DNA from: Macrostomum lignano
Taxonomy: Eukaryota
DNA length: 64,000 nucleotides
Direction of reading: 5' to 3'
Assembly (NCBI GenBank): GCA_002269645.1
Contig: NIVC01001895.1
Location: 60,772-124,771 of the forward strand
Part shown: positions 14,976 through 51,400 of the stretch, in pieces
Numbering within the stretch: position 1 is the stretch's first letter
How the letters are laid out: each line of letters starts with the position of its first letter
Translations under genes and position numbers: made by a program
Notes under the pieces: generated by a model
Seen by the model: the letters and a program-made list of their open reading frames with translations, nothing else
What the model was told of the DNA's origin: nothing
The model's database searches: none

Positions 14976-17900
14976 TTAGACAGCCACACGAGCATGAGTA
15001 GACTCATTCAGATGCTCATCAACCGCATTAATCTCGTCCAGATAGACCTGCGGATTCTGCCCGCCGTCATTGCCAGACTGCTCAGCAATCTCCTTTATCA
15101 TGGCTTGCATTGACCGCTGACGGTGCTGCTGGCTTCTCTGACGTCGGTCTCGAGTTCGCTTGAGTCTGCGCACGTTGCCAGCCGCCAGGCTGTAGCCCTT
15201 GTGCAGGGTGAGCAGCACGCCGCACAGAGAGGCGCCGACGCTCCAAACGGATTGAGTTCGAACGACATGCGACTCAGCCAGAATGCCGCTCTTCCATTCG
15301 AAGAAGAGAAAGAACTGCTTCTTCAGTCTTGTGTCCGCAGTTGGTCGCATCGGCCCTGCCTGAGTTCGCTTCATGCGCCGCCGTCTCCGCCGCCTCCGGC
15401 CGTCTGTTGCGTTGTCCGACTTGATCGGCGCTTCTGGCGCGTTTTCTATGAAATACGAAGCCGCCAGGCTGCTCTGCGCGTTGTTGAAGGATGATTTGAA
15501 CAAACTTTTATTATGAAAATTCAAGCAATATGCTGAAGAAGAAGAAATTGTAGAAGAAATATTGTATCGCCATATAGTGTCTTTAGGCGTTGTGAAATTT
15601 AGGTCTTGTGAAATTTAGGGCTTGTGAAATTTAAGGCTTGTGAAATTTAGGTCTTGTGAAATTTAGGTCTTGTGAAATTTAGGTCTTGTGAAATTTAGGG
15701 CTTGTGAAATTTAGGTATTGTGAAATTTAGGTCTTGTGAAATTTAGGTATTGTGAAATTTAGGGCTTGTGAAATTTAGGTATTGTGAAATTTAGGGCTTG
15801 TGAAATTTAGGTCTTGTGAAATTTAGGTCTTGTGAAATTTAGGTCTTGTGAAATTTAGGTCTTGTGAAATTTAGGGCATGTTAAATTTAGGTCTTGTGAA
15901 ATTTAGGTCTTGTGAAATTTAGGGCATGTTAAATTTAGGTCTTGTGAAATTTTAGGTCTTGTGAAAATTAGGTCTTGTGAAATTTAGGTCTTGTGAAATT
16001 TAGGTATTGTGAAATTTAGGTCTTGTGAAATTTAGGGCTTGTTAAATTTAGGTCTTGTGAAATTTAGGTCTTGTGAAATTTAGGGCTTGTTAAATTTATA
16101 GTTTATGCAGTCTGATGCAAGTTTTGTTTCCGACGTTGTGAAATTTAGGGTTTGGGAAAGCTCTGCCCCCTGACACTCTGAAAATATATTAGGCAACCAA
16201 TATTTGGATCCGAGAAAGCCCCGCTGACCTCCATATCTAGAATGGTCCTAGCTGGTCCTTCTCCATCTTCCAGGTGCAGCTGGGTCATGCTGATCTTGCC
16301 CCACAGGCGCAGGCCTGCCGACGCAGCGTGCAAGGACTCCTGGGCGTGAGCTCGGGCTATGCGGTCTAGTCTGAGTTGGTCCGGTCTGAAAACATGATCA
16401 GTACGCTTTTTGGAGTGCTTTTTGGTTGAATTATTTATTAAAACATAATGATCATATTACAGAAATGAGCACATCAATAGCTCACTCAGGTGACAATCAT
16501 ATTACAGAAATGAGCACATCAATAGCTCACTCAGGTGACAATCATATTACAGAAATGAGCACATCAATAGCTCACTCAGGTGACAATCATATTACAGAAA
16601 TGAGCACATCAATAGCTCACTCAGGTGACAATCATATTACAGAAATGAGCACATCAATAGCTTACTCAGGTGACAATCATATTACAGAAATGAGCACATC
16701 AATAGCTCACTCAGGTGACAATCATATTACAGAAATGAGCACATCAATAGCCCACTCAGGTGACAATCATATTACAGATATCAGCACATCAATAGCTCAC
16801 TCAGGTGACAATCATATTACAGAAATGAGCACATCAATAGCTCACTCAGGTGACAATCATATTACAGAAACCAGCACATCAATAGCTCACTCAGGTGACA
16901 ATCATATTACAGAAATGAGCACATCAATAGCTCACTCAGGTGACAATCATATTACAGAAATGAGCACATCAATAGCTCACTCAGGTGACAATCATATTAC
17001 AGAAATGAGCACATCAATAGCTCACTCAGGTGACAATCATATTACAGAAATGAGCACATCAATAGCTCACTCAGGTGACAATCATATTACAGAAATGAGC
17101 ACATCAATAGCTCACTCAGGTGACAATCATATTACAGAAATGAGCACATCAATAGCTCACTCAGGTGACAATCATATTACAGAAATGAGCACATCAATAG
17201 CTCACTCAGGTGACAATCATATTACAGAAATGAGCACATCAATAGCTCACTCAGGTGACAATCATATTACAGAAATGAGCACATCAATAGCTCACTCAGG
17301 TGACAATCATATTACAGAAATGAGCACATCAATAGCTCACTCAGGTGACAATCATATTACAGAAATGAGCACATCAATAGCCCACTCAGGTGACAATCAT
17401 ATTACAGATATCAGCACATCAATAGCTCACTCAGGTGACAATCATATTACAGAAATGAGCACATCAATAGCTCACTCAGGTGACAATCATATTACAGAAA
17501 CCAGTACATCAATAGCTCACTCAGGTGACAATCATATTACAGAAATGAGCACATCAATAGCCCACTCAGGTGACAATCATATTACAGAAATGAGCACATC
17601 AATAGCTCACTCAGGTGACAATCATATTACAGAAATGAGCACATCAATAGCTCACTCAGGTGACAATCATATTACAGAAACCAGTACATCAATAGCTCAC
17701 TCAGGTGACAATCATATTACAGAAATGAGCACATCAATAGCCCACTCAGGTGACAATCATATTACAGATATCAGCACATCAATAGCTCACTCAGGTGACA
17801 ATCATATTACAGAAATGAGCACATCAATAGCTCACTCAGGTGACAATCATATTACAGAAACCAGTACATCAATAGCTCACTCAGGTGACAATCATATTAC

Positions 17901-19110
17901 AGAAACCAGTACATCAATAGCTCACTCAGGTGACAATCATATTACAGAAATGAGCACATCAATAGCTCACTCAGGTGACAATCATATTACAGAAACCAGC
18001 ACATCAATAGCTCACTCAGGTGACAATCATATTACAGAAATGAGCACATCAATAGCTCACTCAGGTGACAATCATATTACAGAAATGAGCACATCAATAG
18101 CTCACTCAGGTGACAAATCAGCATCGAATTCCAAACTCACAGCGCACTGAACTCGGAGAAGTTGTGCATCAGCAGAAACGACATGGTGTAAAAGTCCTGA
18201 CTGTGACTGTGGGTGACAAAGTGCAGAGACACGGTCTCCTTCTCCTTGACCCTTCTCGGTCCCCGAAAAACTATTACGAAATGGGAGTCGTTCAACCGGA
18301 GTGAGTAAGGGTCATTGTACTCCACTGAGATGAAGGTGCAGTTTATTGTTTGCAGATTCCAGTCCGTGGCATTGTCTGCAATGAAGACGGTCAATCATGA
18401 ATTACTTTAATAGGTAAATATCTATTTAATCCCAGCACACAAGACAGAAGTATCAAAGGTGTTGATTTCTTCAAAGGATAAAAATATTGAAACTTGCAGA
18501 ATCTTTCATATAGGAGCATACAAGCTGGAGTCGTTTTGCGATCCTGATTTCGGTGAATCCTAAAGGAAAAGAGGATTACGATACTAGGATTGCAACAATG
18601 ACGACAGCAGCAACAACAAAATCAACAAAAAATGTTGTAATATCAACAACAACGGAGGAACAACAAAAACATCATCATCAACAACAACAACAACAACAAC
18701 AACAACAAAAACAACAACAACATAGAAACAACAGCAACAACAATAGAAACAATAACAATAACAGTAGAAACAACAACAATATAAACAATAACAATAACAG
18801 TAGAAACAACAACAATATAAACAACAACAATAACAGTAGAAACAACAACAACAAAAACAACAAAAACAGCAACAACAATAACCAGTAGCAACAGCAATAA
18901 CAACAACAATAACAACAACAACAACATCAACAAAAAAACAACAATAAAAATAACAGCAACAATAAAAATATATCAACAACAACAACAACAACATGAACAA
19001 TAAAAATTTATCAACAACAACAACAACAACAACAACAACATGAACAATAAAAATTTATCAACAACAACAACAACAACAACAACAACAGCAGCAACAATAA
19101 CAACAACAAT

Positions 19111-19156
<46 letters not shown>

Positions 19157-22100
19157 TCAACAATAACAGCAACAATAAAAATAATATCAACAACAACAAC
19201 CGAACAGCAAGATCAAATAAACAAATCACAAACATGGATTTCACTAGCAAACATGTGCAAATCTAAATCAGCATCGTTGAATCAGTCGCTATTTCGGTTA
19301 GAAACCCACTGTACGAGCGTACAGTAAAAAAATACAACTTTAGATCATGAAAAAATGATAAAAGTAAAACTCACTCCAGAATTCCATCTGCAGCTCATTG
19401 AAATGATTGCAGGACTCGAGGTGCGCCTTCTCCGGGAAAATCACGATGGCTGATTGGAAACATATTCAAGTGCGAAAAAATATTGATTAAGTTTTCTTGC
19501 TTCATAAACCTTAGCCTATCTGGTAATTAGATTAAGCTGTCAGTTGATTAATTGAACAGAAATCAGTCTTTTCGAGTCAACCAACAACAATATACGAGCC
19601 ATTGTCTGGGGTTGTCAAACAATGGAGCTTAGATCGCATGGGATATCAGTTCCAGGCAATTGTTTTTCCCATAGATCTACTCCATTCTCCCAGTTTTTCT
19701 CTGTATGATAAAAATGGGTGCATGGGCGATCAGAGATTTTGTCTGCTTACATCATGACACGGAGTATTTTATATCAGATGTTTGGTTTGATTGATGTGTG
19801 CCTCTGATATTTTGCTTTTTTGACAGGCTGACAACACAGTTGACAATCAAGGGCGCCGCTAACTACTGAAGGATCTGAGAGAGACAGCGGCGCCACTACT
19901 GAAGGATCTGAGAGAGACAGCGGCGCCAGTACTGAAGGATCTGAGGGAGATAGTGGTGCCACTACTGAAGGATCTGAGGGAGACAGTAGCGCCACTACTG
20001 AAGGATCTGAGGGAGACAGTAGCGCCACTACTGAAGGATCTGAGGGAGACAGCGGCGCCACTACTGAAGGATCTGAGGGAGACAGCGGCGCCACTACTGA
20101 AGGATCTGAGGAGACGGTGGCGCCACTACTGAAGGATCTGAGGGAGACAGTAGCGCCACTACTGAAGGATCTGAGGGAGACAGTAGCGCCACTACTGAAG
20201 GATCTGAGGGAGACAGTAGCGCCACTACTGAAGGACCTGAAGGGTCTGAGAAAAATAGTGGCGCCACTCCTGAAGGGTCTGAGAGAAATACTACTGAAGA
20301 ATCTGAAAGAGATAGTGGCGCCACTCTGAAGAATCTGAAAGAGATAGTGGCGCCACTCCTGAAGGGTCTGAGAGAAATACTACTGAAGAATCTGAAAGAG
20401 ATAGTGGCGCCACTCTGAAGAATCTGAGGGAGACGGTAGCGCCACTACTGAAGGATCTGAGGAGACGGTGGCGCCACTACTGAAGGATCTGAGGAGACGG
20501 TGGCGCCACTACTGAAGGATCTGAGAAAGACAGCGGCGCCACTCCTGAAGGATCTGAGGGAGACAGTGGCGCCACTACTGAAGGACCTGAAGTGACAATC
20601 AGCTGAGTAAGCATCTGGTGGACAGTTTTTGAGGCAGAAAAAATTGAATTGACAACATGACTGACAGGCTGTTAGATAGGCTTCGAAGCAATCTTTTTCA
20701 AAGCCTGCCTTTCATCCAACCCACTAGAGTGCACCAGTGCATCCCTAAGCCTGAAATCCCGGAAGCGCAGTCAGTGTGCCGCGCTGTCTGTTATTAATTA
20801 TAAACTGCAGTAGCAACGGAGGCCCTGATGGGACGGGAGGGCTCAGACAGACTCCCTGTGTATCAATATTTATATAGAATTCATTTATGACGAGGCCACA
20901 TCAGCAATAAAGGATGTCTGTGAGATCTCAGCCTCTAGGAAAGATATTGTTGTCATGCTCATTGAGAAGGGATAGGTGGGGATGGGATAGATTGGGATGG
21001 GATAGATTGGGATGGGAGAGATAGGGATGGGATGAATATAAAGCAAAAAGCATCGGTCAGAAGCTGCTCATAAAGCATCAGTCAGAAGCTGCTCATAAAA
21101 CATCAGTCAGAAGCTGCTCATAAAGCATCAGTCAGAAGCTGCTCATAAAACATCAGTCAGAAGCTGCTCATAAAGCATCGGTCAGAAGCTGCTCATAAAG
21201 CATCGGTCAGAAGCTGCTCATGAAGCATCAGTCAGAAGCTGCTCATAAAGCATCAGTCAGAAGCTGTGCATAAAGCATCGGTCAGAAGCTGCTCATAAAG
21301 CAGTCAGAAGCTGCTCATAAAGCATCGGTCAGAAGCTGCTCATAAAGCATCAGTCAGAAGCTGTGCATAAAGCATCGGTCAGAAGCTGCTCATAAAGCAG
21401 TCAGAAGCTGCTCATAAAGCATCGGTCAGAAGCTGCTCATAAAGCATCGGTTAGAAGCTGCTCATAAAGCATCAGTCAGAAGCTGCTCATAAAGCATCAG
21501 TCAGAAGCTGCTCATAAAGCATCGGTCAGAAGCTGCTCATAAAGCATCAGTCAGAAGCTGCTCATAAAGCATCGGTCAGAAGCTGCTCATAAAGCAGTCA
21601 GAAGCTGCTCATAAAGCAGTCAGAAGCTGCTCATAAAGCATCGGTTAGAAGCTGCTCATAAAGCATCGGTCAGAAGCTGCTCATAAAGCATCGGTCAGAA
21701 GCTGCTCATAAAGCATCAGTCAGAAGCTGCTCATAAAGCAGTCAGAAGCTGCTCATAAAGCAGTCAGAAGCTGCTCATAAAGCATCGGTTAGAAGCTGCT
21801 CATAAAGCATCAGTCAGAAGCTGTTCATGAAGCATCGGTCAGAAGCTGCTCATAAAGCAGTCAGAAGCTGCTCATAAAGCATCGGTCAGAAGCTGCTCAT
21901 AAAGCATCGGTCAGAAGCTGCTCATAAAGCATCGGTCAGAAGCTGCTCATAAAGCATCGGTCAGAAGCTGCTCATAAAGCATCGGTCAGAAGCTGCTCAT
22001 AAAGCATCGGTCAGAAGCTGCTCATAAAGCATCGGTCAGAAGCTGCTCATAAAGCATCGGTCAGAAGCTGCTCATAAAGCATCGGTCAGAAGCTGCTCAT

Positions 22101-25100
22101 AAAGCATCGGTCAGAAGCTGTTCATGAAGCATCGGTCAGAAGCTGCTCATAAAGCATCGGTCAGAAGCTGCTCATAAAGCATCGGTCAGAAGCTGCTCAT
22201 AAAGCATCGGTCAGAAGCTGCTCATAAAGCATCGGTCAGAAGCTGCTCATAAAGCATCAGTCAGAAGCTGCTCATAAAGCATCAGTCAGAAGCTGCTCAT
22301 AAAGCATCGGTCAGAAGCTGCTCATAAAGCATCGGTCAGAAGCTGCTCATAAAGCATCAGTCAGAAGCTGCTCATAAAGCATCGGTCAGAAGCTGCTCAT
22401 AAAGCATCAGTCAGAAGCTGCTCATAAAGCATCGGTCAGAAGCTGCTCATAAAGCATCGGTCAGAAGCTGTTCATGAAGCATCAGTCAGAAGCTGCTCAT
22501 AAAGCATCAGTCAGAAGCTGCTCATAAAGCATCGGTCAGAAGCTGCTCATAAAGCATCAGTCAGAAGCTGTTCATGAAGCATCAGTCAGAAGCTGCTCAT
22601 AAAGCATCAGTCAGAAGCTGCTCATAAAGCATCAGTCAGAAGCTGCTCATAAAGCATCAGTCAGAAGCTGCTCATGAAGCATCAGTCAGAAGCTGCTCAT
22701 AAAGCATCGGTCAGAAGCTGCTCATAAAGCATCGGTCAGAAGCTGCTCATAAAGCATCGGTCAGAAGCTGCTCATAAAGCATCGGTCAGAAGCTGCTCAT
22801 AAAGCATCGGTCAGAAGCTGCTCATAAAGCATCGGTCAGAAGCTGTTCATACAGCATCGGTCAGAAGCTGCTCATAAAGCATCGGTCAGAAGCTGCTCAT
22901 AAAGCATCGGTCAGAAGCTGCTCATAAAGCATCGGTCAGAAGCTGCTCATGAAGCATCAGTCAGAAGCTGCTCATAAAGCATCGGTCAGAAGCTGCTCAT
23001 AAAGCATCGGTCAGAAGCTGCTCATAAAGCATCGGTCAGAAGCTGTTCATGAAGCATCAGTCAGAAGCTGCTCATAAAGCATCAGTCAGAAGCTGCTCAT
23101 AAAGCATCAGTCAGAAGCTGCTCATAAAGCATCAGTCAGAAGCTGCTCATGAAGCATCAGTCAGAAGCTGCTCATAAAGCATCGGTCAGAAGCTGCTCAT
23201 AAAGCATCGGTCAGAAGCTGCTCATAAAGCATCGGTCAGAAGCTGCTCATAAAGCATCGGTCAGAAGCTGCTCATACGCACCAGGGGCCTCAAATTCTTC
23301 CACCGGTCGGTGCTTGAGCGACCGAACCGGGAACCGCAGCGCCAGCAGCAGCTCCTCGAGCAGCTGCACGGCGAACAGACAGGCAGCCAAGCCGAAGGCG
23401 GTGAGCACTGCGGTGCAGACCAGTCTGCACACGTACTCGCTGCGGGTCATGTGCCGCTCCGCAGTCGGCGCTGCTGTCACCGAAGCCGCATCCGACGACG
23501 TTGATCGACGCTTTTTTCTTTGTCTTGTCCGGCCGTTTATCGGCGCGAATTGGATCAGTGCGCGACGCTTTTGTAGCCAAGTTCGCTGGCGGAGTGACGG
23601 CTGGGCGGCTGGGCTGCAATGCGATGGCGTGGGAGCGTAGATATCTAATCTAATCTAATCTAATCTAATCTAATCTAATCTAATCTAATCTAATCTAATC
23701 TAGTCTAATCTAATCTAGTCTAATCTAGTCTAATCTAGTCTAATCTAATCTAATCTAGTCTAGTCTAGTCTAGTCTAATCTAATCTAGTCTAGTCTAGTC
23801 TAGTCTAATCTAGTCTAATCTAATCTAATCTAATCTAGTCTAGTCTAGTCTAGTCTAATCTAATCTAGTCTAGTCTAGTCTAGTCTAATCTAATCTAGTC
23901 TAATCTAATTTAATCCAGTCTAATCTAGTCTAATCTAATCTAGTTTAATATAATCTAGTCTAGTTTTATCTAATCTAATATCCGTCTTTTTCACACTAGT
24001 TTTTCATAATAAATTTCCTCCCAAGTTTCTGCATTAACAATGTATCTCGATAGATTTTGCATACTTCGCTGGAACAACCGAAATCCGAGCCTGCTGCTGC
24101 TGCTGTTGCTCCAGCCTAGGGGTGTTCGGGGTTCGGGGTCGGGTCGGGTTTCGGGTCGGGTTTTGGTACCGGGTTCGGGGTTCGGGGTAGGTGTTCCGGG
24201 TCGGGTTCGGGGTTCGGGGTAGGGGTACCGGGTTCGGGGTTCGGGTCGGGTTTGGCCACCGGGTTTTCGGGGTTTTGAACAATTATCATTCTCAATAGTA
24301 TTTTCAAGCACTTTTTACTCCTTATGCAAAATCCACAATGCGAAAGATATGCATTGAGTTTCAGGTACAACTTAAGTTATATTTTACATACAATTTGAAA
24401 CGGAAATAGCAGATAGAACCATGGATTCATTTACACTTTCTGGTAAATAACGATTGTCGTTTTTCGACCCATTCAGTCTTGCAGTTGATGATTTAAAAAA
24501 TTACGTTCAGTAATAATTTTACATGTGCTACGTGTAACATGGTCTGAACTTCTGGATTGGATGAGGAAGCTTAAAATTTATAAATACACTATTATTCTCC
24601 ACGCATCAGTCGCCAATAATCAATTATCACAATGATTACCTACTCATATCAGCATACAATTTTATGTAAAGACGTCACTTTAGTTTTTACATAGCAATTC
24701 TGTTATACCACTACTGACTTACTGTTAACTGTAGTCAAAAGTAAAAATAAATATATATTTGTGATTAACTCTCCTGTTTCATTGTATCATTGTTTTATCT
24801 GTGCTATCTCTTTATCGCTCTAGTTCTATCTCTACTGATATCTACACTACAGGGTATAATCTAATTTTATTGTACTCTATTTTTGCAGCTTAAATAAACT
24901 CATAGATGTAATATACCTTTTAACAGTGTTGTTGGGCATAAGTGAAATTTATTTAGTCCAAGTGTTCCTACCACTGAGTGAAGTGAGTTTGATTTAGTCT
25001 AGCTGTTGATTTTGGCCATAGACGATTGATGAAAAGTGAAATATATTTGGTCGCTCTTGCTTAGCGCTGAGCTTACCGTGACTTAAAGTTAGTCGTAGTG

Positions 25101-26239
25101 AAATTTATTTAGTCCGCTTAGAGTTCTTGTTTGGCTATAGAATTTGCTGAATCATAGAATTCTTTCCATGGAGGCTCCAGCAGCACAGAGACGAGTCGCT
25201 GTTTCGCAGCAAGACAGGCGAAGGCTGGTCAATGCCTTTGTTCTCAACGAGGACTGGCTCAATCTGGCAAAACAGCTCAACATACCGCGCCAGTCTGCAA
25301 GGAATGTTATCGTTAAGTTTGAGCGAACTGGTCGTGTCGAGGCGGAAAAGCGAGGAGGCAACAAGCCGAAAGCTCTGAGTGATGAGATGATCGAGGCTCT
25401 CGTGGGATTTGTGGCGGACACGCCAGCTGCGACACTACAAGACATGCGGAGACATCTTATGTGTTTTTGCGCCTTTTTGAAAGTTTACGATCTCGTTGAC
25501 CATATTCATTTCACTTTGACTAAATAAAAGTCACGATCTCGTTGCGCGCGCTAAAAACGACTATATTGAATTCACCGTCTATGGCTGCAAGCTAATTGAA
25601 GCGACTAAATCAAACTCACTTCGCTCAGTGGTAGGAGCACTTGGACTAGATAAATTTCACTTATGCCCAACAACACTGTTAAAAGGTATATTACTATTAT
25701 TATTCATTTACTTTGTCTATGAGCCCAGTATGTAGTCTACTATCTAGCATCTACTGAAAATAAATGACAAAGGACCGAATTAACTAACATTGTAACTAAC
25801 AATCACAGTTTGAATTTCCTGAAGCTGAAGGATTGGAATTGTGCAATGTAATTTACACTTATACAACAAATATAAACTGTGTTTGTCCCAAGTCATTCAT
25901 GAGCTAACGTCGCGCCCAAAAGGCTTACAATTGAAGTGAAGTACAAATGAATATTGTACCTTTATCGGTGGAAAAAGTGTATTAATTTATTAAAATGATT
26001 GACCAAAATAAGCGTGAAAATGTTCGGGGTTACGTTCGGGGTCGGGTCGGGTTTTGGTACCGGGTTCGGGGTTCGGGGTTGGAAGAAATGTTCGGGACGG
26101 GGTTCGGGGTTCGGGGTAGGGGTACCGGGTTCGGGGTAAACCCCGAACCCCGAAAAAATGGCCGACCCGAACACCCCTACTCCAGCCTCTCACCGACATC
26201 GCCGGAGTTCTGCAGTCGATCATCTGCATCCAACTCCAT
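14976..26239 (-). CDS. PACC1: Proton-activated chloride channel (PAC/TMEM206) homologue. Exons: 26239-26180 plus 24108-24065 (split by the hAT insertion), 23613-23282, 19449-19375, 18375-18141, 16385-16229, 15473-14976. 466 aa if restored; 377 aa from the ATG at 23450
   Basis: All five introns are GT-AG with consistent phases. Gapless motif matches to recalled human PAC: LRFPVRSLKHRPVEEFEAP vs LKHPVMSVSYKEVDRYDAP; IFPEKAHLESCNH vs LYPGQAQLLSCKH; GPRRVKEKETVSLHF vs GPREVKKRELVFLQF; SAGLRLWGKISM vs SGGFRTWVKMSL; FFLFFEWK and WSVGASLCGVLLTLHK vs FFVVFEWK and WNTIALLCGAFLALFK. Two predicted TM helices. Confidence 0.88.
15590..16145. repeat. 16-bp minisatellite (TTGTGAAATTTAGGTC) embedded in a copy of the foldback-element arm
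   Basis: Direct reading; both flanks match the reverse complement of 11085-11180. Confidence 0.92.
16448..18118. repeat. 45-bp satellite, about 37 copies, filling a PACC1 intron
   Basis: Period 45; it generates the spurious 574-aa ORF (HITEMSTSIAHSGDN)n. Confidence 0.96.
18590..19205. repeat. Degenerate (CAA/AAC)n microsatellite region
   Basis: Direct reading. Confidence 0.92.
19850..20590. repeat. About 33-bp minisatellite (GCGCCACTACTGAAGGATCTGAGGGAGACAGTA)
   Basis: Direct reading. Confidence 0.92.
21046..23277. repeat. 25-bp satellite (AAAGCATCGGTCAGAAGCTGCTCAT), about 89 copies
   Basis: Period 25; runs up to the PACC1 donor site at 23281. Confidence 0.96.
23644..23975. repeat. (TCTAA/TCTAG)n pentanucleotide microsatellite
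   Basis: Direct reading. Confidence 0.95.
24117..26179. mobile_element. Non-autonomous hAT-type DNA transposon, 2063 bp
   Basis: Perfect 14-bp TIR TAGGGGTGTTCGGG. Perfect 8-bp TSD CTCCAGCC at 24109-24116 and 26180-26187. Subterminal TTCGGG(G) repeats at both ends. Confidence 0.92.
24914..25688 (+). mobile_element. Internally deleted Tc1/mariner (IS630-Tc1-mariner) element nested in the hAT
   Basis: About 85-bp near-perfect inverted termini flanked by TA. ORF 25168-25527 encodes a paired-type HTH, an RGGNKPK linker and a second HTH; no DDE domain. Confidence 0.82.
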
Positions 26240-26619
26240 CTTGTTGGCAATTCGATATTTCGTTCAATATTTTACCTATTTAGACAAACATATAGGTGCT
26301 CTGAAGCTCAGATAAAATGATTAAAAATATGAGAAGCCAAATCAAAAACCATCGTAGGTCTTGCAGGCAAACTAAATTATTTAATCCCCTCGCATCCTCA
26401 TCCTGCACGTGATGAAACTGGGAGGCAAAATCGCTGATTGGCTGGACTCGCGCACCCCTCCATCAGAGCGCCCCGCTAACCGAATGGGCATCTGGAAGTC
26501 CACGCAAAGGGGGAAGAGGAGCAAAACTTGGGGGCGTACAAGGACTACTTGAGATTTCTATCTGGAATAGAAACTTCAATTTTTGAATTTTCAAAAATTC
26601 TGTCATTGCTCAGAGAATT

Positions 26620-26985: not shown

Positions 26986-27454
26986 TTCTTGCATAGAATT
27001 TGAATATATTTCAGTGAAATATGACTCAGAAATCTAGGACTTCAAGGAAGTAGAATTAATCGTCCAAGTTCTGAATACTGGAGTCCTTGAGCCTGACTAG
27101 CCGACCAACCACGCCGGTGTCCCAGCTGTCAGGGAGTGGCTATGGTTATTGCTAAAAAAGGGATATGGCAATAGAGGCCGAAAAGTACACAGCCGCATGC
27201 CATTTCCGACTAGTAAATTTGGTCGCAGCATCCAGGCGGATTCTTGGGGGCGTCTTTCTTCAGTTGAAAATTTCATCACACCAGGAATTTAATTAAATTA
27301 GCTCTAGCACTAGGTTAGCTGACAAAGTAGAATTCTAGTAATGCGCAGGAAGTTCAAAGTTGAAAAAATGTTTAAAAATCAAGACCATGAAACGAAGTAC
27401 AAGGCTAATAAATAAGCATAAAAACTTTTTAACGGTTTGCCCATTGCGTTAGCT

Positions 27455-27882
27455 TGGTAGTTGTAGAAAATGTTCCAGAACACGCCGAAAAGAAACATGC
27501 ATGCCAGCACAACCCAGCACACAATCGACACCTTGCTCTCCCACGGTTTCTTGTCGATGTTTCGTAGAATGGGAACTCCAGCAAAGAACCCAGCCAGCAG
27601 GCCTCCGACGTGAGCAGCAACGCTCACAGGGAGGGTTTGAGTTCCGGAGTAGCGTCCATAGAAACTAATGCCAAAGTCCAGGATGAGCAAGAGGGTCAGA
27701 TAGACAAGGCGCATGATCCCACTCAGAAGGAATTTCAGCGGATTTGCTCTGATATCCAGCCAGTCATCCTGCAGCTCCTCCCAGTTCATGAGCACTGTGG
27801 CATAGTGGGCTCCGAACAAAGCGTACACCCCACCGGAGGCTCCGATCAGCATGGTGTTGTGGTCTGCGATGCTGCTAGCCAT
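27455..27882 (-). pseudogene. 5'-truncated rhomboid copy (from just before the GASGG helix to the C-terminal TM helix)
   Basis: Near-identical to copies A and B from MASSIADH to FWNIFY. No homology upstream; 3-nt deletion then an unrelated C-terminus. Confidence 0.85.
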
Positions 27883-28947
27883 GGATTTTTCCGCTATTGT
27901 TGTCAATAGAAATTCAAAGCTTCACAATATCAGAACAACCCTTAGGCTGCACCGTGTATAGTATCCATGGTTGTCCATCGCTGTATGCGTTTATCAGGAG
28001 CTGACATACTCAATTAATATTATACTCAATCTCCAAGTAGGCTTGGAGATCAAAATATCTATATTTCTTTATGCGCGAGAAATCTTCGAAAGAGTCAGCC
28101 GCCATCTTCGTCCATTTGGCCGACCCTTAACTGCCTTGAGCTCCATATTTTGCCTGAAGTTTTTAAATGCTAGAGGGCTTCTGGGGTTGCTCAGAACCTT
28201 GGAGACAAGGCTTATACAGGATCTGGTATCTAAGTTTAGATAGCTGGCTTTCGGTCTAATGCTGTTTTGCTTTAAACACCATCTTCCTTAGTAAATTTAC
28301 TTCACAATAGTGTGACTCCACAAAGTCAAAACCTACATGTAGTCGATTCAAAAATCTTTATTCCTTTCTTTTGTTGCCTCCCCAGAGGGGGGCGCAGATC
28401 GCTAGTCCATACACTATTTATCCAGGCGTAGCCTTTAAAGTTGGATATGCAACTAGCTTAACCACTGCACCGTCTGTCCAAGTTGTTTATTATTGTGAGA
28501 CATTTTCAGGCTGCGAAAGCCCAACATCATGAGCATGAAGATAGAATGTGAGATAGAGAGAGCTGGGGGCGCTCTATCGCTTCGTTTGCTGTCCGTCTAT
28601 TCAGTTTTTTTCTATATAGAAGTAACTGAGAAAGTAAGAAGCTTCTAACTAAAATATGGACGGAAAGTAAGGGTTCTAACGGACAAGAGCAGTTTGTTTT
28701 CAAAATTTTGACAAAAGAGACTTAATTAATATTGTCCTTTTTTCGTAAAACAAGATGACAAATTTTTTTTTGTTTTTCGATCGAATTAACTTCTTATGCC
28801 AGGATTGCGATGACCAAGTTGCTGCAGAAACTCAATTTCATTCATTTTATAGAATATCGAGCGCTCGATATTCTCTGATTCATTTCTAAACCGCTAATTT
28901 CTTCCTCTAGTATTGATCGATCAAGATGCCACAAACATCTAGCTACA

Positions 28948-32862: not shown

Positions 32863-34488
32863 TTATCCTTTCGAGTCGGCTAGCGCTGTGTTGGAGCAGA
32901 TGATGCTGTCAGCTGCTGGGTAGTTCTTGTAGAAAATGTTCCAGAACACGCCGAAAAGAAACATGCAAGCCAGCACAACCCAGCACACGATCGATACCTT
33001 GCTCTCCCACGGTTTCTTGTCGATGTTTCGTAGAATGGGAACTCCAGCAAAGAAGCCAGCCAGCAGGCCTCCGACGTGAGCAGCAACGCTCACAGGGAGG
33101 GTTTGAGTTCCGGAGTAGCGTCCATAGAAACTGATGCCAAAGTCCAGGATGAGCAAGAGGGTCAGATAGACAAGGCGCATGATCCCACTCAGAAGGAATT
33201 TCAGCGGATTTGCTCTGATATCCAGCCAGTCATCCTGCAGCTCCTCCCAGTTCATGAGCACCGTGGCATAGTGGGCTCCGAACAAAGCGTACACCCCACC
33301 GGAGGCTCCGATCAGCATTGTGTTATGGTCTGCGATGCTGCTGGCCATGGCACCAATAATGACGCCGATGAAGAAGACTGGTGCAACACGCCAAGCCTTG
33401 TGAACAGTCTCAAGAGGCACACCTAGAAGGAACGACAGGATCGTGTTGAAGACGACGTGGTGGTAGCCATTGTGCAGAAACATGTAGGACACGAAGCGCC
33501 AAGCTTCTTGTCGGAGACTCGGACAGAAGACCAGCGGGCTGTAGTACGGGAATCCTTTTTCCCATCCCACCTTGTTCCACTCGGGTCCCTTGGACAGCTC
33601 AACCGTGTAGATGATGAAGAAGATCCAAACGGCTACATAGAACAGCGGAATGAAGAGCGGCGGCGGCCTGCAGTTGTACGCCTCAAGGTAGCTCTCTTCC
33701 GGGATCGGCTCTCCGGCTTGAGCTGCCTGGATCTTCTCTTTGCGAAGCTTCTTCTGCGCTGCAGGCGTCATGCTCTCGATGAACGAGTTGATGACTCTCT
33801 TCGATCGAGACACCTCCGACTTTTTCGTGTACTTCATTCCGTTAAAGAACTCGTCCCAAGACACTCGTTGGTTTCCGTCCTTGTCCAGCCTCTTAAACAG
33901 TCCCTGAAGGTTTCGAGACCGGTTAAAGTTGACAGACTCTGCCATCTCCATGAACTCCTTGAGCGGCATGCCTCCAGCAGTCACGTACGGATCGAAGCGG
34001 TACTTAAAGTTCTTGGTGAGCCACTCTCTGTACTGGTCTTCGTTTATGTGCTCAGAGTTGTCGCAGTTCGATGAAGCGCACACACTGATTGCGGCACTTC
34101 CGCCTCCGTGACCTCCGTCAGGCTTGTCGTGTCCGGAGACGCTGAGGAAGTTTCTGTTTGTGTTCGACGCAGTGACAGTCGGATGCTGCATCTCGAACTG
34201 CTGGTTCGCGAACTGGGCCTTGAGCGAGTGGCTCGTTCCGTTTCCGTTGGCTGCGGTCCCGCCGCCGATACTTTGCGAGTATTCGTATCGTCCGGTAGCT
34301 GAGGCAGGATACTGCTGGCGGGTGTCCAGCTCCACCCGAACTTCCGGGACAGAGTAGCCATACTGGAGCTGCCGCTGGCCGGACGATGTGGTTGTGGCGA
34401 CTCTCTGCTGCGTCTGGGACTGGTAACTTTGGGACTGGTTGGACTGCTGAGCCTGGGGCTGCATGGTGTAGTAGCCGCGATTGTCCAT
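32863..34488 (-). CDS. Intronless EF-hand-containing rhomboid intramembrane serine protease (Rhomboid-4/RHBDL-like), copy A, 541 aa
   Basis: EF hand DKDGNQRVSWDEF, WR motif, HVVFN, catalytic GASGG and AAHVGG. The ATG at 34488 matches the start of copy B. Confidence 0.93.
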   Translation of the reverse strand: MDNRGYYTMQPQAQQSNQSQSYQSQTQQRVATTTSSGQRQLQYGYSVPEVRVELDTRQQYPASATGRYEYSQSIGGGTAANGNGTSHSLKAQFANQQFEMQHPTVTASNTNRNFLSVSGHDKPDGGHGGGSAAISVCASSNCDNSEHINEDQYREWLTKNFKYRFDPYVTAGGMPLKEFMEMAESVNFNRSRNLQGLFKRLDKDGNQRVSWDEFFNGMKYTKKSEVSRSKRVINSFIESMTPAAQKKLRKEKIQAAQAGEPIPEESYLEAYNCRPPPLFIPLFYVAVWIFFIIYTVELSKGPEWNKVGWEKGFPYYSPLVFCPSLRQEAWRFVSYMFLHNGYHHVVFNTILSFLLGVPLETVHKAWRVAPVFFIGVIIGAMASSIADHNTMLIGASGGVYALFGAHYATVLMNWEELQDDWLDIRANPLKFLLSGIMRLVYLTLLLILDFGISFYGRYSGTQTLPVSVAAHVGGLLAGFFAGVPILRNIDKKPWESKVSIVCWVVLACMFLFGVFWNIFYKNYPAADSIICSNTALADSKG

Positions 34489-35399
34489 CTCTGTTCGGTC
34501 AGTTTTCCAATTTTCTGTTAGACTTTCTTTGCTCAAGTGTTCAGTGAGCTGACTCAGTTCGTTCCTGCCCAACATTTGTATACCATTGAGTGCAACAAAG
34601 CAAGTCACGAAGCCCTCCCCCATTCCCTGGCAGCCAATTCGCTCATGCTAGAAGCATGCTTGCTTCACGCCCTCTACTTCTGCCGAATGAGCGTTTTGCA
34701 TTTGCAGCCTGTAGTAAATGTAGCTCTTTACCAACGCCTTTCGTAATTGAATGCTGTAACACGCTTGGCTAGCTGTGTGCTAAGAATATCATTCTATTTA
34801 CCTGAAATATTTTGTGAAGCGGCAAAATAAGATATTTATTATAAGCCTGCGCTTCAACTCAATACTTTATCGGCGTATTCACTTGGAGCAATGGGTTTAC
34901 TAAAGGGTGTTTACGCGTCTTCGGCTTTGCTTTAATTTTTTGCAGTGGCACGTATAAAACACTTTGTAGCTGCTGGAAACTTCTGAGGAGGTTGCGATGC
35001 ATTTCATTAGTTTATATCGTCTTTTATCATGTTATGCATTGTTCTTCTATTTACTGATCACTAGCGATATGTTCGCTACATTCGCTTGTGAAGTGTATAA
35101 TGTATGTAAAGATTAGCTTCATCGTTTTATTGAATTTTGCTTCGGAAGCCTTTCATTTCAACCTCGTGAAGACGAATCGCATGCTTAGCCATTGTTCAAT
35201 AGATTGACCAGGTAAATCTCTACAATTACCGCTCCTACAATAAATGCAAACGTACCTGCTTAAACGGAACTGATTAATATACCAGGTAGGAAGTCAAATG
35301 CGACTATAACCCAAATAACGTCAAATAATGTACAATCATACAATCATATAATTTCGCGTACATTTCTAGTCGGGGTTGCTGCATACTTTGCGTCTTGCA

Positions 35400-38191: not shown

Positions 38192-39814
38192 TCATCCCAA
38201 CGAGTCGGCCAGCGCTGTATTGGAGCAGACGATGCTGTCAGCTGCTGGGTAGTTCTTGTAGAAAATGTTCCAGAACACGCCGAAAAGAAACATGCATGCC
38301 AGCACAACCCAGCACACAATCGACACCTTGCTCTCCCACGGTTTCTTGTCGATGTTTCGTAGAATGGGAACTCCAGCAAAGAAGCCAGCCAGCAGGCCTC
38401 CGACGTGAGCAGCAACGCTCACAGGGAGGGTTTGAGTTCCGGAGTAGCGTCCATAGAAACTGATGCCAAAGTCCAGGATGAGCAAGAGGGTCAGATAGAC
38501 AAGGCGCATGATCCCACTCAGAAGGAATTTCAGCGGATTTGCTCTGATATCCAGCCAGTCATCCTGCAGCTCCTCCCAGTTCATGAGCACCGTGGCATAG
38601 TGGGCTCCGAACAAAGCGTACACCCCACCGGAGGCTCCGATCAGCATTGTGTTATGGTCTGCGATGCTGCTGGCCATGGCACCAATGGTTACACCGATTA
38701 GAAACACTGGACCTACTCGCCAAGCTTTGTGGACACTTTCCAGCGGGATTCCTAGAAGGAACGACAGGATCGTGTTGAAGACGACGTGGTGGTAGCCATT
38801 GTGCAGGAACATGTAGGACACGAAGCGCCAAGCTTCTTGTCGGAGACTCGGACAGAAGACCAGCGGGCTGTAGTACGGGAATCCTTTTTCCCATCCCACC
38901 TTGTTCCACTCGGGTCCCTTGGACAGCTCAACCGTGTAGATGATGAAGAAGATCCAAACGGCTACATAGAACAGCGGAATGAAGAGCGGCGGCGGCCTGC
39001 AGTTGTACGCCTCAAGGTAGCTCTCTTCCGGGATCGGCTCTCCGGCTTGAGCTGCCTGGATCTTCTCTTTGCGAAGCTTCTTCTGCGCTGCAGGCGTCAT
39101 GCTCTCGATGAACGAGTTGATGACTCTCTTCGATCGAGACACCTCCGACTTTTTCGTGTACTTCATTCCGGTAAAGAACTCGTCCCAAGACACTCGTTGA
39201 TTTCCGTCTTTGTCCAGCCTCTTAAACAGTCCCTGTAGGTTTCGAGACCGGTTAAAGTTGACAGACTCTGCCATCTCCATGAACTCCTTGAGCGGCATGC
39301 CTCCAGTAGTCACGTACGGATCGAAGCGGTACTTGAAGTTCTTGGTGAGCCACTCTCTGTACTGGTCTTCGTTCATGTGCTCAGAGTTGTCGCAGTTCGA
39401 CGAAGCGCATACACTGATTGCGGCACTTCCGCCTCCGGGACCTCCGTCAGGCTTGTCGTGTCCGGAGACGCTGAGGAAGTTTCTGTTTGTGTTTGACGCA
39501 GTGACAGTCGGATGCTGCATCTCGAACTGCTGGTTCGCGAACTGGGCCTTGAGCGAGTGGCTCGTTCCGTTTCCGTTGGCTGCGGTCCCGCCGCCGATAC
39601 TTTGCGAGTATTCGTATCGTCCGGTAGAGGCAGGATACTGCTGGCGGGTGTCCAGCTCCACCCGAACTTCCGGGACAGAGTAGCCATACTGGAGCTGCCG
39701 CTGGCCGGACGATGTGGTTGTGGCGACTCTCTGCTGCGTCTGGGACTGGTAACTTTGGGACTGGTTGGACTGCTGAGCCTGGGGCTGCATCGTGTAGTAG
39801 CCGCGGTTGTCCAT
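38192..39814 (-). CDS. Intronless EF-hand rhomboid protease, copy B, 540 aa
   Basis: Same motifs as copy A; intact ORF. Confidence 0.93.
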   Translation of the reverse strand: MDNRGYYTMQPQAQQSNQSQSYQSQTQQRVATTTSSGQRQLQYGYSVPEVRVELDTRQQYPASTGRYEYSQSIGGGTAANGNGTSHSLKAQFANQQFEMQHPTVTASNTNRNFLSVSGHDKPDGGPGGGSAAISVCASSNCDNSEHMNEDQYREWLTKNFKYRFDPYVTTGGMPLKEFMEMAESVNFNRSRNLQGLFKRLDKDGNQRVSWDEFFTGMKYTKKSEVSRSKRVINSFIESMTPAAQKKLRKEKIQAAQAGEPIPEESYLEAYNCRPPPLFIPLFYVAVWIFFIIYTVELSKGPEWNKVGWEKGFPYYSPLVFCPSLRQEAWRFVSYMFLHNGYHHVVFNTILSFLLGIPLESVHKAWRVGPVFLIGVTIGAMASSIADHNTMLIGASGGVYALFGAHYATVLMNWEELQDDWLDIRANPLKFLLSGIMRLVYLTLLLILDFGISFYGRYSGTQTLPVSVAAHVGGLLAGFFAGVPILRNIDKKPWESKVSIVCWVVLACMFLFGVFWNIFYKNYPAADSIVCSNTALADSLG

Positions 39815-48454: not shown

Positions 48455-51400
48455 TCAAGGAAGCTCAAAACTGCGCTGTCGAAGTCGTCCGCCGCCGGAC
48501 TTGCCAACCACCGGATCGCCCTGCCTGCCGTCCGTGGCCGTCACCACGATGCGCGGTTGGTCAGCGGCGGATGCCGCTGCAGCCACGCCGCCACCGAGGC
48601 GATCGCGTCGACGACTGTCGAAATCGGCGCCGCTCCGACCTCTGCTCAAGTCCGACCTGTCGAAGTCGGCTCCGCTCCGGCCTCTGCTCAAGTCCGACCT
48701 GTCGAAATCGGCTCCGCTCCGACCTCTGCTCAAGTCCGACCTGTCGAAATCGGCTCCGCTCCGACCTCTGCTCAAGTCCGACCTGTCGAAATCGGCTCCG
48801 CTCCGACCTCTTCTACTCAAGTCCGACCTGTCGAAGTCGGCTCCGCTCCGACCTCTGCTCAAGTCCGACCTGTCGAAATCGGCGCCGCTCCGACCTCTGC
48901 TCAAATCCGACCTGTCGAAGTCGGCTCCGCTCCGGCCTCTGCTCAAGCCCGACCTATCGAACTCGGCTCCGCTCCGGCCTCTGCTCAAGTCCGACCTGTC
49001 GAAGTCGGCTCCGCTCCGACCTCTGCTCGATTCTGGCCCATCAAAGTCTCTGCTCAAGCGACTACGACCAGTCTCAAGATCTAGCGGGCTCTTCCTCTCT
49101 TGGGCCTTGTCGGAAGCGCCGAGGCCACTCAGCCGATCAAACTCTCGAGGGCTCCTTTTCAGATCTTTTTCGGGGTCCTGCTCGGCGGTCCGATCTTTGC
49201 CGGAGTCAAGGTTGCGGCCCAGTCGCCTGGCGGAATCTGACGCAGGACTTTTGTCTTTGCTCCTGTTGAACTCGTCCGTTTGCAACCTGTCGGCACGTCT
49301 GATGTTGAAGCTTCCACCAAACTTCTTCTCTGGCGGCGGCGCTGATGGCTTTTTTTCTGCTCCTTGGAGCCCGCGGCGATCCGACTGGCTTTTGTCGCTG
49401 TTTAGAGTTCTTGGACTGCGCTTCTGGTCCTCGGATGATTTGGTAGGTCGTTTTGAGGAGTCGTCCAACCCCTTGCCAGTCCTCTTCTCCTCGCCTGTCA
49501 GCTTCTTGTAGCTCTCTGCAGCCTTCGAGCGCAGCTTCGGCTTGCCGAACGCGTCCAGCGAGCTCTCGCTATCGGAGCTCGCTGGCCGGCCCGCCTGACG
49601 GCCTGGCGATGCAACCTTTCGGCTGGCGCCGCTCGGCGGAGTCTTGCCAACCGGACGTCTTTTCTTGCTGCGCTCGTCGTCTGAAGACGAAGTTGACGAA
49701 CTCGAGGAGTCCGAGGAAGCAGCGCGGCCTCGAGCTGACTTTGACTTCTTCTTGGCAGCCGCAGCAGCTCGGCTCTGCTTCTGCTGCTCCTCCAATCGTT
49801 TTCGTTTCTTCTCCTGCTGCTTCTTTTTCTTCTCCTCTTCGGCTTTCTGCTTCTCGAGCAGCTCTTTGCGGATTCGTTCGAAATTCTCATTGTCACTGCA
49901 CAATCGCAGCTGACGGTAAAGCAGCTTGCCGGAGTCCGACGCAGGCAGCTCCACCGTCTTGTCCTTCTTCAGCCAGGCCTGGTCCTTGGACTGCGGCACG
50001 AATGTCACCTGCACGGCGTAGGGCAGCTTCACCGAGCCGTGGTTCGGATCGAAGTCGTCGTGCGACTTCACGGAGTCCACCGACTCGCCGTCGGACGCTG
50101 AGCTAGTCTTATCGGAGCCCGTTGCGTCGCTGTCCTCGCTGTCGCTGGGCTGATCCGAGCTCTTCAGGCTGGCGCGGCGGCGGCTGCGACCGAAAAACCC
50201 GGCGCTGGCATCGACGGAGTCCTCGGCCTCTTCGTCCGACCGCTTCCGCTTGCCCTTCTTGGCGCCGCTCCTGTCCTCCAGTCTCTGCTTTTTACGTTGC
50301 TTCTCTCTTGCGTCGGCGTTCTCGAACAGGATTTTGCCCTTGTCCTGGGTCAGCCCGTCTGGCATCTTGTTGGAGAACTGCAGCCGCTGCAGGTGCTGCA
50401 GAATCTCCTCCATCACCAGGTACTTGGTCACTACGATCTGGGAGTTTCAGGATTTGGGGGGATAATATTTCGTAAAATGCATCATTATCGCAATAACAAT
50501 TGATTACACCTGCCGTAATGGGAAGATGTGCAACCGACAGCTCAGCCGCAGCTATTTGCGCGGCGCATCTGAAGGCTGCGTACGGCTGTTCAGTCCAAGG
50601 ACTGGGGGGTCGCCACACACAGCCTCAATTACCCCCAGCTAATGCTGGCACCCATTTTACAGCAGAGTCAAGTGTCTTGCTCAAGGACACAAATTGTTCC
50701 TGACCTTTCAGTCATGAGTCCGACTCTCTCAGTACTGGGCTACAACCCCACAACAACATTGACAGAGATATGAAAATGAAAAGCAAGAGAAGCAAGGGCA
50801 GCTTTCTTCTTTTTTCAAATGATCTGGGTGATTTACAACATTTTCTAAAACACAATGTCTAGTTTAAATACGATAAAAAACAGCGGCTTATCAAGAAAAA
50901 TTTTGCTTCTTAAAAATTGCTACTGGGTCCACCTGTGCAGCACTACGGATGTTACCTGTTTTTCTCTATCAATAAAGTCTTCTGTTTTAAGCTGGAGCTG
51001 TTCGGATGGTTGATTTAATTGATAAGTGGCTCTGCCAATGTCTGAGGTTTTTTAGGCTACTAAAAGCACAGATACTATAAACACTAGATAGGCCACTCCA
51101 GCTAATTTTCACAACACGACAGTTTACTCTACTTTCTGCTTAGTAGTAGTAAAAACATTTTAGCGTTATTTATATTTTTTTAAAATAAAAAAACAGATGA
51201 ATGCAATGCAGCAATTGTATTGATTTTTTGCAAAAAGAAACTTATAATTATACTTTCCACAATTCAAAGCAACATTGTGAATGCTTTAGATTGCATAGAA
51301 GGCTATATTATTGCAGTCTACTATTGTATATTTAGCAAATACGAGCTATATCATATACTCCATAATCCATATTCGTGAAGCAAAATAGAAAGATTTCTCA

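Follow-up and report, generated by a model that had tools for sequence, protein, structure and literature searches.

A hAT-type transposon in the first coding exon of a PAC channel gene copy of Macrostomum lignano

What becomes of a gene copy when a transposon enters its first coding exon, in a genome that holds the same gene several times over? The question is raised by a 64-kb stretch of Macrostomum lignano DNA (assembly GCA_002269645.1, contig NIVC01001895.1, positions 60,772 to 124,771; 64,000 nucleotides, called the window here), in which a minus-strand gene for a homologue of the proton-activated chloride channel PAC (PACC1, TMEM206) is interrupted by a non-autonomous element of the hAT type. 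More than half of the M. lignano genome consists of repeats, and there are about three near-identical copies of each gene. Against that background the insertion is an ordinary event, one transposon among many in a genome with three near-identical gene sets. Its most likely consequence is that this one PAC copy no longer yields a full-length product. The coordinates of the features are collected in Table 1.

The limits of the element are sharp. Its terminal inverted repeats (TIRs) agree at 14/14 positions and the target-site duplications (TSDs) on either side at 8/8, and the limits given by an earlier sequence-only reading of this DNA, 24117-26179, hold exactly. Read on the minus strand, the site runs ...GGT GAG AGG CTG GAG / TAGGGGTGTTCGGG ... 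CCCGAACACCCCTA / GGCTGGAG CAA CAG.... The whole window was scanned for pairs of perfectly inverted termini with a minimum length of 12 or 14 bp, at most 6 kb apart and flanked by an exact 8-bp direct repeat. Only two structures satisfied the scan, the element in the PAC gene and an unrelated one at 51067-53111. First-order Markov simulations of the window (n = 20) gave 0 hits at 10 and 12 bp. Scan and simulations together exclude a chance origin of the TIR/TSD structure.

The gene around the element is otherwise intact. Exons were assigned by tblastn and inspection of splice sites; the gene extends from 26239 to 14976, and all of its introns are GT-AG. Removal of the element with one copy of the duplicate gives MELDADDRLQNSGDVGERLEQQQQQQARISVVPA, and the predicted empty-site sequence contains GGTGAGAGGCTGGAGCAACAGCAG. 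The start codon (ATG, 26239-26237) lies in the context AACAAGATGG. Exon 1 ends at 24065 and joins the acceptor at 23613 in frame (phase 2, AA/C = Asn). The open exon, its ATG and the GTATGC donor that joins it to the exon at 23613 had all been proposed from the sequence alone, and each was recovered here. The restored coding sequence is 1326 nt long, encodes 441 residues in five exons, and contains no other defect.

The restored protein matches Pfam PF15122 (TMEM206) at 86.2 bits, with a cut-off of 27 and E = 2.8e-24, and, across the extracellular domain and the second transmembrane segment (TM2), the solved human PAC structures, 7jna and 9hqn among them (E about 1e-21 to 1e-20). Query residues 155-268 and 318-387 align with human residues 146-255 and 270-338, and the stretch 'lcg.l.l.k' retains the TM2 Lys, which we take to be the pore lysine. 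By these matches the predicted product is a proton-activated chloride channel homologue, in agreement with the earlier reading. The family, the structural alignment, the TM2 lysine and the topology of two transmembrane segments all fit. The protein differs from other members in its longer N-terminus (about 95 residues before the first transmembrane segment, TM1), which is of low complexity and lineage-specific, and in its long C-terminal tail.

The element shows the structural hallmarks of the hAT superfamily, an 8-bp duplication and a YARNG terminus (PMC3014272). Its 14-bp TIR begins with TAGGG, which reads as Y-A-R-N-G. A further trait, known from Ac/Ds, is the binding of the transposase to hexamer arrays within the terminal 200 bp (PMC3260210). 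The two end blocks of the element contain 21 TTCGGG/CCCGAA motifs (18 + 3), clustered in the terminal ~200 bp, while TTCGGG occurs at 0.2 per kb elsewhere in the window. By analogy with Ac/Ds these hexamers are presumed to be transposase-binding sites. The hAT identity proposed earlier is upheld by these four traits, all of them structural: duplication, terminus, inverted repeat and subterminal arrays. From its sequence the element is best described as a non-autonomous, Ds-like hAT element, and it presumably depends on a hAT transposase. A hAT transposase has a BED finger, an RNase-H-like core and a hAT dimerisation domain. Membership in the superfamily is structural, since the analysis turned up neither a transposase nor an autonomous partner. 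Inspection of open reading frames (ORFs) and Pfam show none for a transposase in the element. The window has 34 ORFs of 150 residues or more, and Pfam recognised no hAT transposase in the 10 of them that were submitted.

Non-autonomous elements of the Ac/Ds type (Ds2, Ds-like elements with filler, animal hAT-N) resemble this one in several respects. They share the 8-bp TSD, the short TIR with YARNG, the hexamers repeated many times in the outer 200 bp or so at either end, and an interior of unrelated filler and nested insertions devoid of transposase. The Ac/Ds termini are TAGGGATGAAA/CAGGGATGAAA, and the first of these occurs in PMC3260210. The differences lie in the hexamer, AAACGG in Ac/Ds and TTCGGG/GGGTTC here, in the orientation of the repeat units, most of which point the same way at both ends of this element, and in the target, which follows nTnnnnAn only in part. 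That motif is the target consensus of the Ac clade. The duplicate CTCCAGCC carries the T of position 2, whereas its seventh base is C, and thus agrees at 1/2 constrained positions; hAT duplications of the NTNNNNAN-like type are on record (PMC3014272).

It is highly improbable that the structure is anything other than a hAT insertion, whether an element of another superfamily with 8-bp duplications (P, Merlin, Zisupton or similar), an assembly artefact or a chance repeat. The partial fit of the target and the lack of any link to a transposase would suit such an origin, as would the occurrence by chance of the 20-nt terminus in a bacterial metagenome contig. However, hAT is indicated by the terminus (YARNG), by the TIR of 14 bp, by the exact TSD of 8 bp and by subterminal hexamers like those of Ac, and the TIR core AGGGGT is common to known hAT TIRs such as CAGGGGTCCCCAAAC (PMC3014272). 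The simulations, with zero hits, speak against a chance repeat. An artefact would not make a perfect TSD, and an independent protein record shows the target uninterrupted.

That record comes from the species itself. A protein search gave two M. lignano UniProt entries, A0A1I8GKN4 (P0001 below) and A0A1I8GFN0, the second of which spans PAC exons 3-5. P0001 reads VKYSTKYRIANK-MELDADDRLQNSGDVGERLEQQQQQQQARISVVPA-NPAAQPSLRQ..., and its junction ...GERLEQQQQQQQARISVVPA/NPAAQ... is the one predicted for empty-site exon 1 followed by exon 2. The interrupted segment is therefore a real first coding exon, as had been supposed, and the empty site, which the sequence-only reading had suggested looking for among alleles or paralogues, exists in the species in this protein record. 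When 1.8 billion representative proteins were searched with P0001, only P0001 itself was returned, so it is the sole independent support for exon 1; the N-terminus had no homologue outside the species in that search.

P0001 is not the product of the window copy. It has 7 Gln where the window has 6, Gln in place of Glu87, and TCA in place of TGA in the leader, and these differences indicate another paralogue or allele as its source. In the window the three diagnostic positions are the 6-Gln run at 24108-24091, the GAG at 23459-23457 and the TGA at 26266-26264. The extra Gln was considered as a footprint of excision and rejected, since a hAT footprint retains duplicated target bases and adds no CAG; slippage within the repeat accounts for it more simply. 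In M. lignano DV1 there are three paralogous sets, which differ mostly by indels and show 2.2% single-nucleotide polymorphisms (1.1% in coding sequence; PMC10733133). A filled copy beside an empty copy of 98-99% identity is what a three-subgenome genome would be expected to contain. As far as its sequence tells, the empty copy could belong to a different one of the three subgenomes S, L1 and L2, which are ~98% identical, or could be another allele; presumably it is a paralogue.

In the favoured reading, which is probable, a hAT-type element has integrated at codons 18-20/21 of PAC exon 1 and duplicated the 8-bp target GGCTGGAG. With the element in place the frame runs ...CTG GAG TAG, and the TAG (26179-26177) consists of the element's first three bases in gene orientation. 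An immediate stop after codon 20, contributed by the element terminus, had been noted before and is found at exactly that point. Because the element opens with an in-frame TAG, an unspliced mRNA encodes 20 residues only. The stop lies upstream of four exon junctions, for which nonsense-mediated decay would, on general knowledge, be expected; decay of the mRNA would make this copy null. Full-length product would then be lost from one of about three redundant PAC copies, a loss that may be tolerated because of neopolyploid redundancy.

Several points weigh against this reading. In-frame splicing routes are predicted to exist, through which the copy might escape being null. Neither a further copy of the element nor an autonomous hAT is present in the 64-kb window, which leaves family membership structural, and the target follows the Ac-type consensus at one constrained position. 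Exact-protein look-ups did not retrieve the empty site as genomic DNA from collections that apparently lack M. lignano contigs; the queries were P0001, P0002, three exon-2/exon-5 ORFs, the ORF of the nested element and the neighbouring rhomboid ORF of 586 aa. P0001 is itself a gene model, of transcript-based or ab initio origin.

The PAC copy could also be rescued from further downstream. Transcripts that start or are trans-spliced below the element might use the ATG at 23450, which is in frame directly before TM1 and is Met90 of the restored protein; the sequence-only reading had offered this start as its second option. Use of this codon would lose 89 residues, so that about 7 cytosolic residues would precede TM1 in the channel. 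M. lignano makes very frequent use of trans-splicing, with 28,273 transcripts that have a single trans-splicing site (PMC5730564), and 23613 is a good acceptor. However, the spliced leader of the species ends in ...TTGCATG (PMC5173321), and its AUG, if joined at 23613, opens an out-of-frame ORF of 109 codons that overlaps Met90 and passes it. Met90 would be reachable by leaky scanning only, which argues against efficient use of 23450. The intact cis donor upstream, at 24064, would compete with trans-splicing, and a ribosome that scans from the normal 5' end would meet a 20-codon ORF and 2 kb of ATG-rich element before Met90. On balance a truncated channel made in this way is very unlikely.

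The leader bears on the start of the gene as well. P0001 begins at the base after the AG at 26277-26276 (ctaaatag/GTA) and is open in frame with a leader-borne AUG. The leader frame of the window copy ends after four codons, MVKY, at a TGA (26266-26264) that is TCA in the other copy. The two copies may thus differ in their start codon. The position of the P0001 start suggests that the PAC gene is normally trans-spliced at this AG. No spliced-leader gene was found in the window.

The earlier choice between a null copy and rescue at Met90 is incomplete, for the element appears removable in frame by splicing in principle. The duplication and the termini together create a GT...AG pair. The predicted donor, GGA/GTAGGG, is made of the last G of the upstream duplicate and the element's first T, and the predicted acceptor, CCCCTAG/GCT, of the element's last A and the first G of the downstream duplicate. 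Splicing here would remove 2065 nt and leave 6 additional nt, with the junction GGCTGGA/GCTGGAGCAA and the reading ERLE-LE-QQQ. The rule would be general: an element of the form T...A in a G-N6-G target gives GT...AG, always leaves 8 - 2 = 6 nt, and preserves the frame. The element would then act as a new intron, comparable to Ds or to introners, and the copy would not be null; its protein would gain Leu-Glu and otherwise be full length.

A number of features suit such an intron. Its product is in frame and stop-free, and of the nine stop-free in-frame combinations of donor and acceptor no other retains every native residue. Pyrimidines make up 63% of the acceptor tract, by eye in the range of the native acceptors. 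At 2.1 kb the element falls inside the normal intron range of M. lignano (mean 1.1-1.4 kb, PMC5730564). Precedents are found in exonic Ds1 splicing and in introners. Exonic Ds1 is described as a source of both donors and acceptors (Wessler 1991, as reported in PMC5432752). Introners draw their splice sites from the element, the TSD or both, and the Aureococcus type, with an 8-bp TSD, adds 12 in-frame nt (PMC9860276; PMC11282704).

Nevertheless, removal of the element as an intron is unlikely on present evidence. Its donor matches MAG/GTRAGT at 4/9 positions, compared with 5-7 for the four native donors (counted by hand), and a stronger, out-of-frame cryptic donor, TCG/GTGAGA (6/9), lies 13 nt upstream. 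No protein with ERLELEQQQ (+LE) was found in searches of protein databases, and there is no evidence that the element family occupies introns elsewhere. Splicing that would restore the exon exactly was also considered; as derived by hand, it calls for a GC-AG intron whose donor is poor, and it was regarded as unlikely.

The known systems mark how far the likeness goes. In the maize exonic Ds/Ds1 alleles (Wessler 1991), as here, a hAT-type element lies in a coding exon with termini able to supply splice signals. In maize the splicing has been shown by experiment and the sites are inside the element ends, while here it is a possibility read from the DNA and 6 nt of the duplicated target would be kept. 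In introners, spliceosomal introns derived from DNA transposons in Micromonas, Aureococcus, dinoflagellates and other groups, an element with TIR and TSD lies in coding sequence and the splice sites belong partly to the element and partly to the TSD, as may be the case here; the Aureococcus type, whose TSD is also 8 bp long, leaves +12 nt in frame, a remnant comparable to the +6 nt predicted here. Introners are short, present in high copy number in hundreds to thousands of introns, and demonstrably spliced. The window has one composite copy of 2 kb with a weak donor. Judged from these signals, it is distinctly unlikely that the element represents the very birth of a spliceosomal intron in an animal, and loss of the full-length product is preferred.

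The insertion is young. This part of the sequence-only reading stands, on the ground that the element is absent from a copy roughly 98-99% identical; the argument first used for it, the perfect TIR and TSD, is a weak clock, with 22 paired positions only. The uninterrupted, near-identical copy implies that the insertion is derived and younger than the divergence of the copies. The intact remainder of the PAC gene likewise indicates that the disruption is young.

Table 1. Positions of the element, its parts and the exons of the interrupted PAC gene in the window
Feature	Position	Strand	Remarks
Non-autonomous hAT-type transposon, 2063 bp	24117..26179	-	perfect TIR and TSD; sits in PAC exon 1
TIR, gene-distal, TAGGGGTGTTCGGG on the + strand	24117..24130		first five bases TAGGG
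TIR, gene-proximal	26166..26179		exact reverse complement of 24117-24130, 14/14
TSD copy 1, CTCCAGCC (GGCTGGAG in gene orientation)	24109..24116		
TSD copy 2, CTCCAGCC	26180..26187		8/8 identical to copy 1
Subterminal repeat block, 63% GC, TTCGGG/GGGTTC hexamer-type units	24117..24290		10 of the element's 21 motifs
Subterminal repeat block, opposite end, 62% GC	26020..26179		last ~40 nt alone inverted; most units oriented as at left end
Nested element, 787 bp, 92-nt inverted repeats (3 mismatches, 97%)	24908..25694		inside the hAT-type element
PAC exon 1 part a, ATG (26239-26237) to codon 20, MELDADDRLQNSGDVGERLE	26180..26239	-	P0001 residues 13-32
PAC exon 1 part b, QQQQQQARISVVPA + 2 nt, to donor GAA/GTATGC	24065..24108	-	P0001 residues 33-47
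Likely acceptor AG (trans-splice or 5' untranslated region), ctaaatag/GTAAAATA	26276..26277	-	directly upstream of exon 1; inferred
PAC exon 2: basic cytosolic stretch, Met90 (ATG 23450-23448), TM1	23282..23613	-	98% identical to P0001
PAC exon 3, extracellular domain	18141..18375	-	alone scores Pfam TMEM206 4.5e-10
PAC exon 4	16229..16385	-	
PAC exon 5: TM2 with conserved Lys, C-terminus, TAA 14978-14976	14976..15473	-	

Between its end blocks the element consists of AT-rich filler (about 31% GC) and the nested second element. The latter contains a remnant ORF (25144-25527, + strand, ATG at 25168) with Pfam scores that all fall below the cut-off, HTH_32 at 7e-4 and HTH_SB, the Sleeping-Beauty helix-turn-helix, at 0.03. 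A homologue search with this ORF found nothing, and inspection of the flanks of the nested element showed no clear target-site duplication and no TA duplication. An origin related to Tc1/mariner is only suggested by the remnant.

An array of GGGTTC elsewhere in the window, ~3 kb long (53217-56196), has about 500 copies that drift to GGGTTT and a strong GC skew. Its hexamer is the same as that of the element's subterminal repeats, and BLAST aligns the element end to the array at about 80%. The array (53.2-56.2 kb) was considered as part of a second copy of the element and rejected, as no matching terminus or TSD is present at its flanks. The other structure found in the scan, 51067-53111, resembles a DNA transposon and measures 2045 bp. 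Its TIR, CACAGATACTATAAACACTAGATAGGCCACTC, is perfect over 32 bp, and the 8-bp duplication, ACTAAAAG, is perfect too. The terminus reads CACAG, which does not fit YARNG; inside lie a tandem array (40 bp x 6.5) and an ORF of 221 residues that has no Pfam hit. A metagenome scan with the 20-nt element terminus gave a single exact match, in contig Ga0136656_1008666 (2860-3030). The match lies in an intergenic hairpin, GGTGTTCGGGGTTCGG..., beside a 577-aa ORF that resembles, by eye from the translations, an ATP-synthase/ATPase catalytic subunit. It was rejected as a real relative; the contig looks bacterial (by eye) and the match is a coincidence of GC-rich repeats.

PAC introns 1-4 (15582-23979) are largely tandem arrays. 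These include ATCTA x 67 (23643-23979), a 25-mer x 90 that starts from the exon 2 donor (21047-23276), a 33-mer x 23, (AAC)n x 178, a 45-mer x 37 (16451-18116) and a 16-mer x 32. The end of P0001 reads into the 25-mer array, which may explain why the gene is split into two models in an older assembly. Directly upstream of PAC there are three rhomboid-domain ORFs in tandem on the minus strand (27379-27906, 32863-34623 and 38192-39814). Two are full length with EF-hands, and the one nearest to PAC has only 175 residues, its end being some 1.1 kb away from the AG at which PAC is putatively trans-spliced. Identical short motifs shared by the three make them look like a recent local triplication. 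No Rfam family was detected at 14-28 kb.

The locus is a clean, textbook-like case in which a Ds-like hAT element has disrupted a single gene copy by inserting into it. Annotations should mark this PAC copy as interrupted, and the element can seed an entry in a repeat library. The insertion also provides a presence/absence marker that separates subgenomes or alleles. If the element were spliced after all, the PAC paralogue would stay functional with an insertion of two residues, and M. lignano would be a metazoan, with three subgenomes of recent duplication, in which hAT elements supply new introns much as introners do. The locus would then combine the birth of an intron from a hAT element in an animal with the early divergence of duplicated genes after whole-genome duplication.

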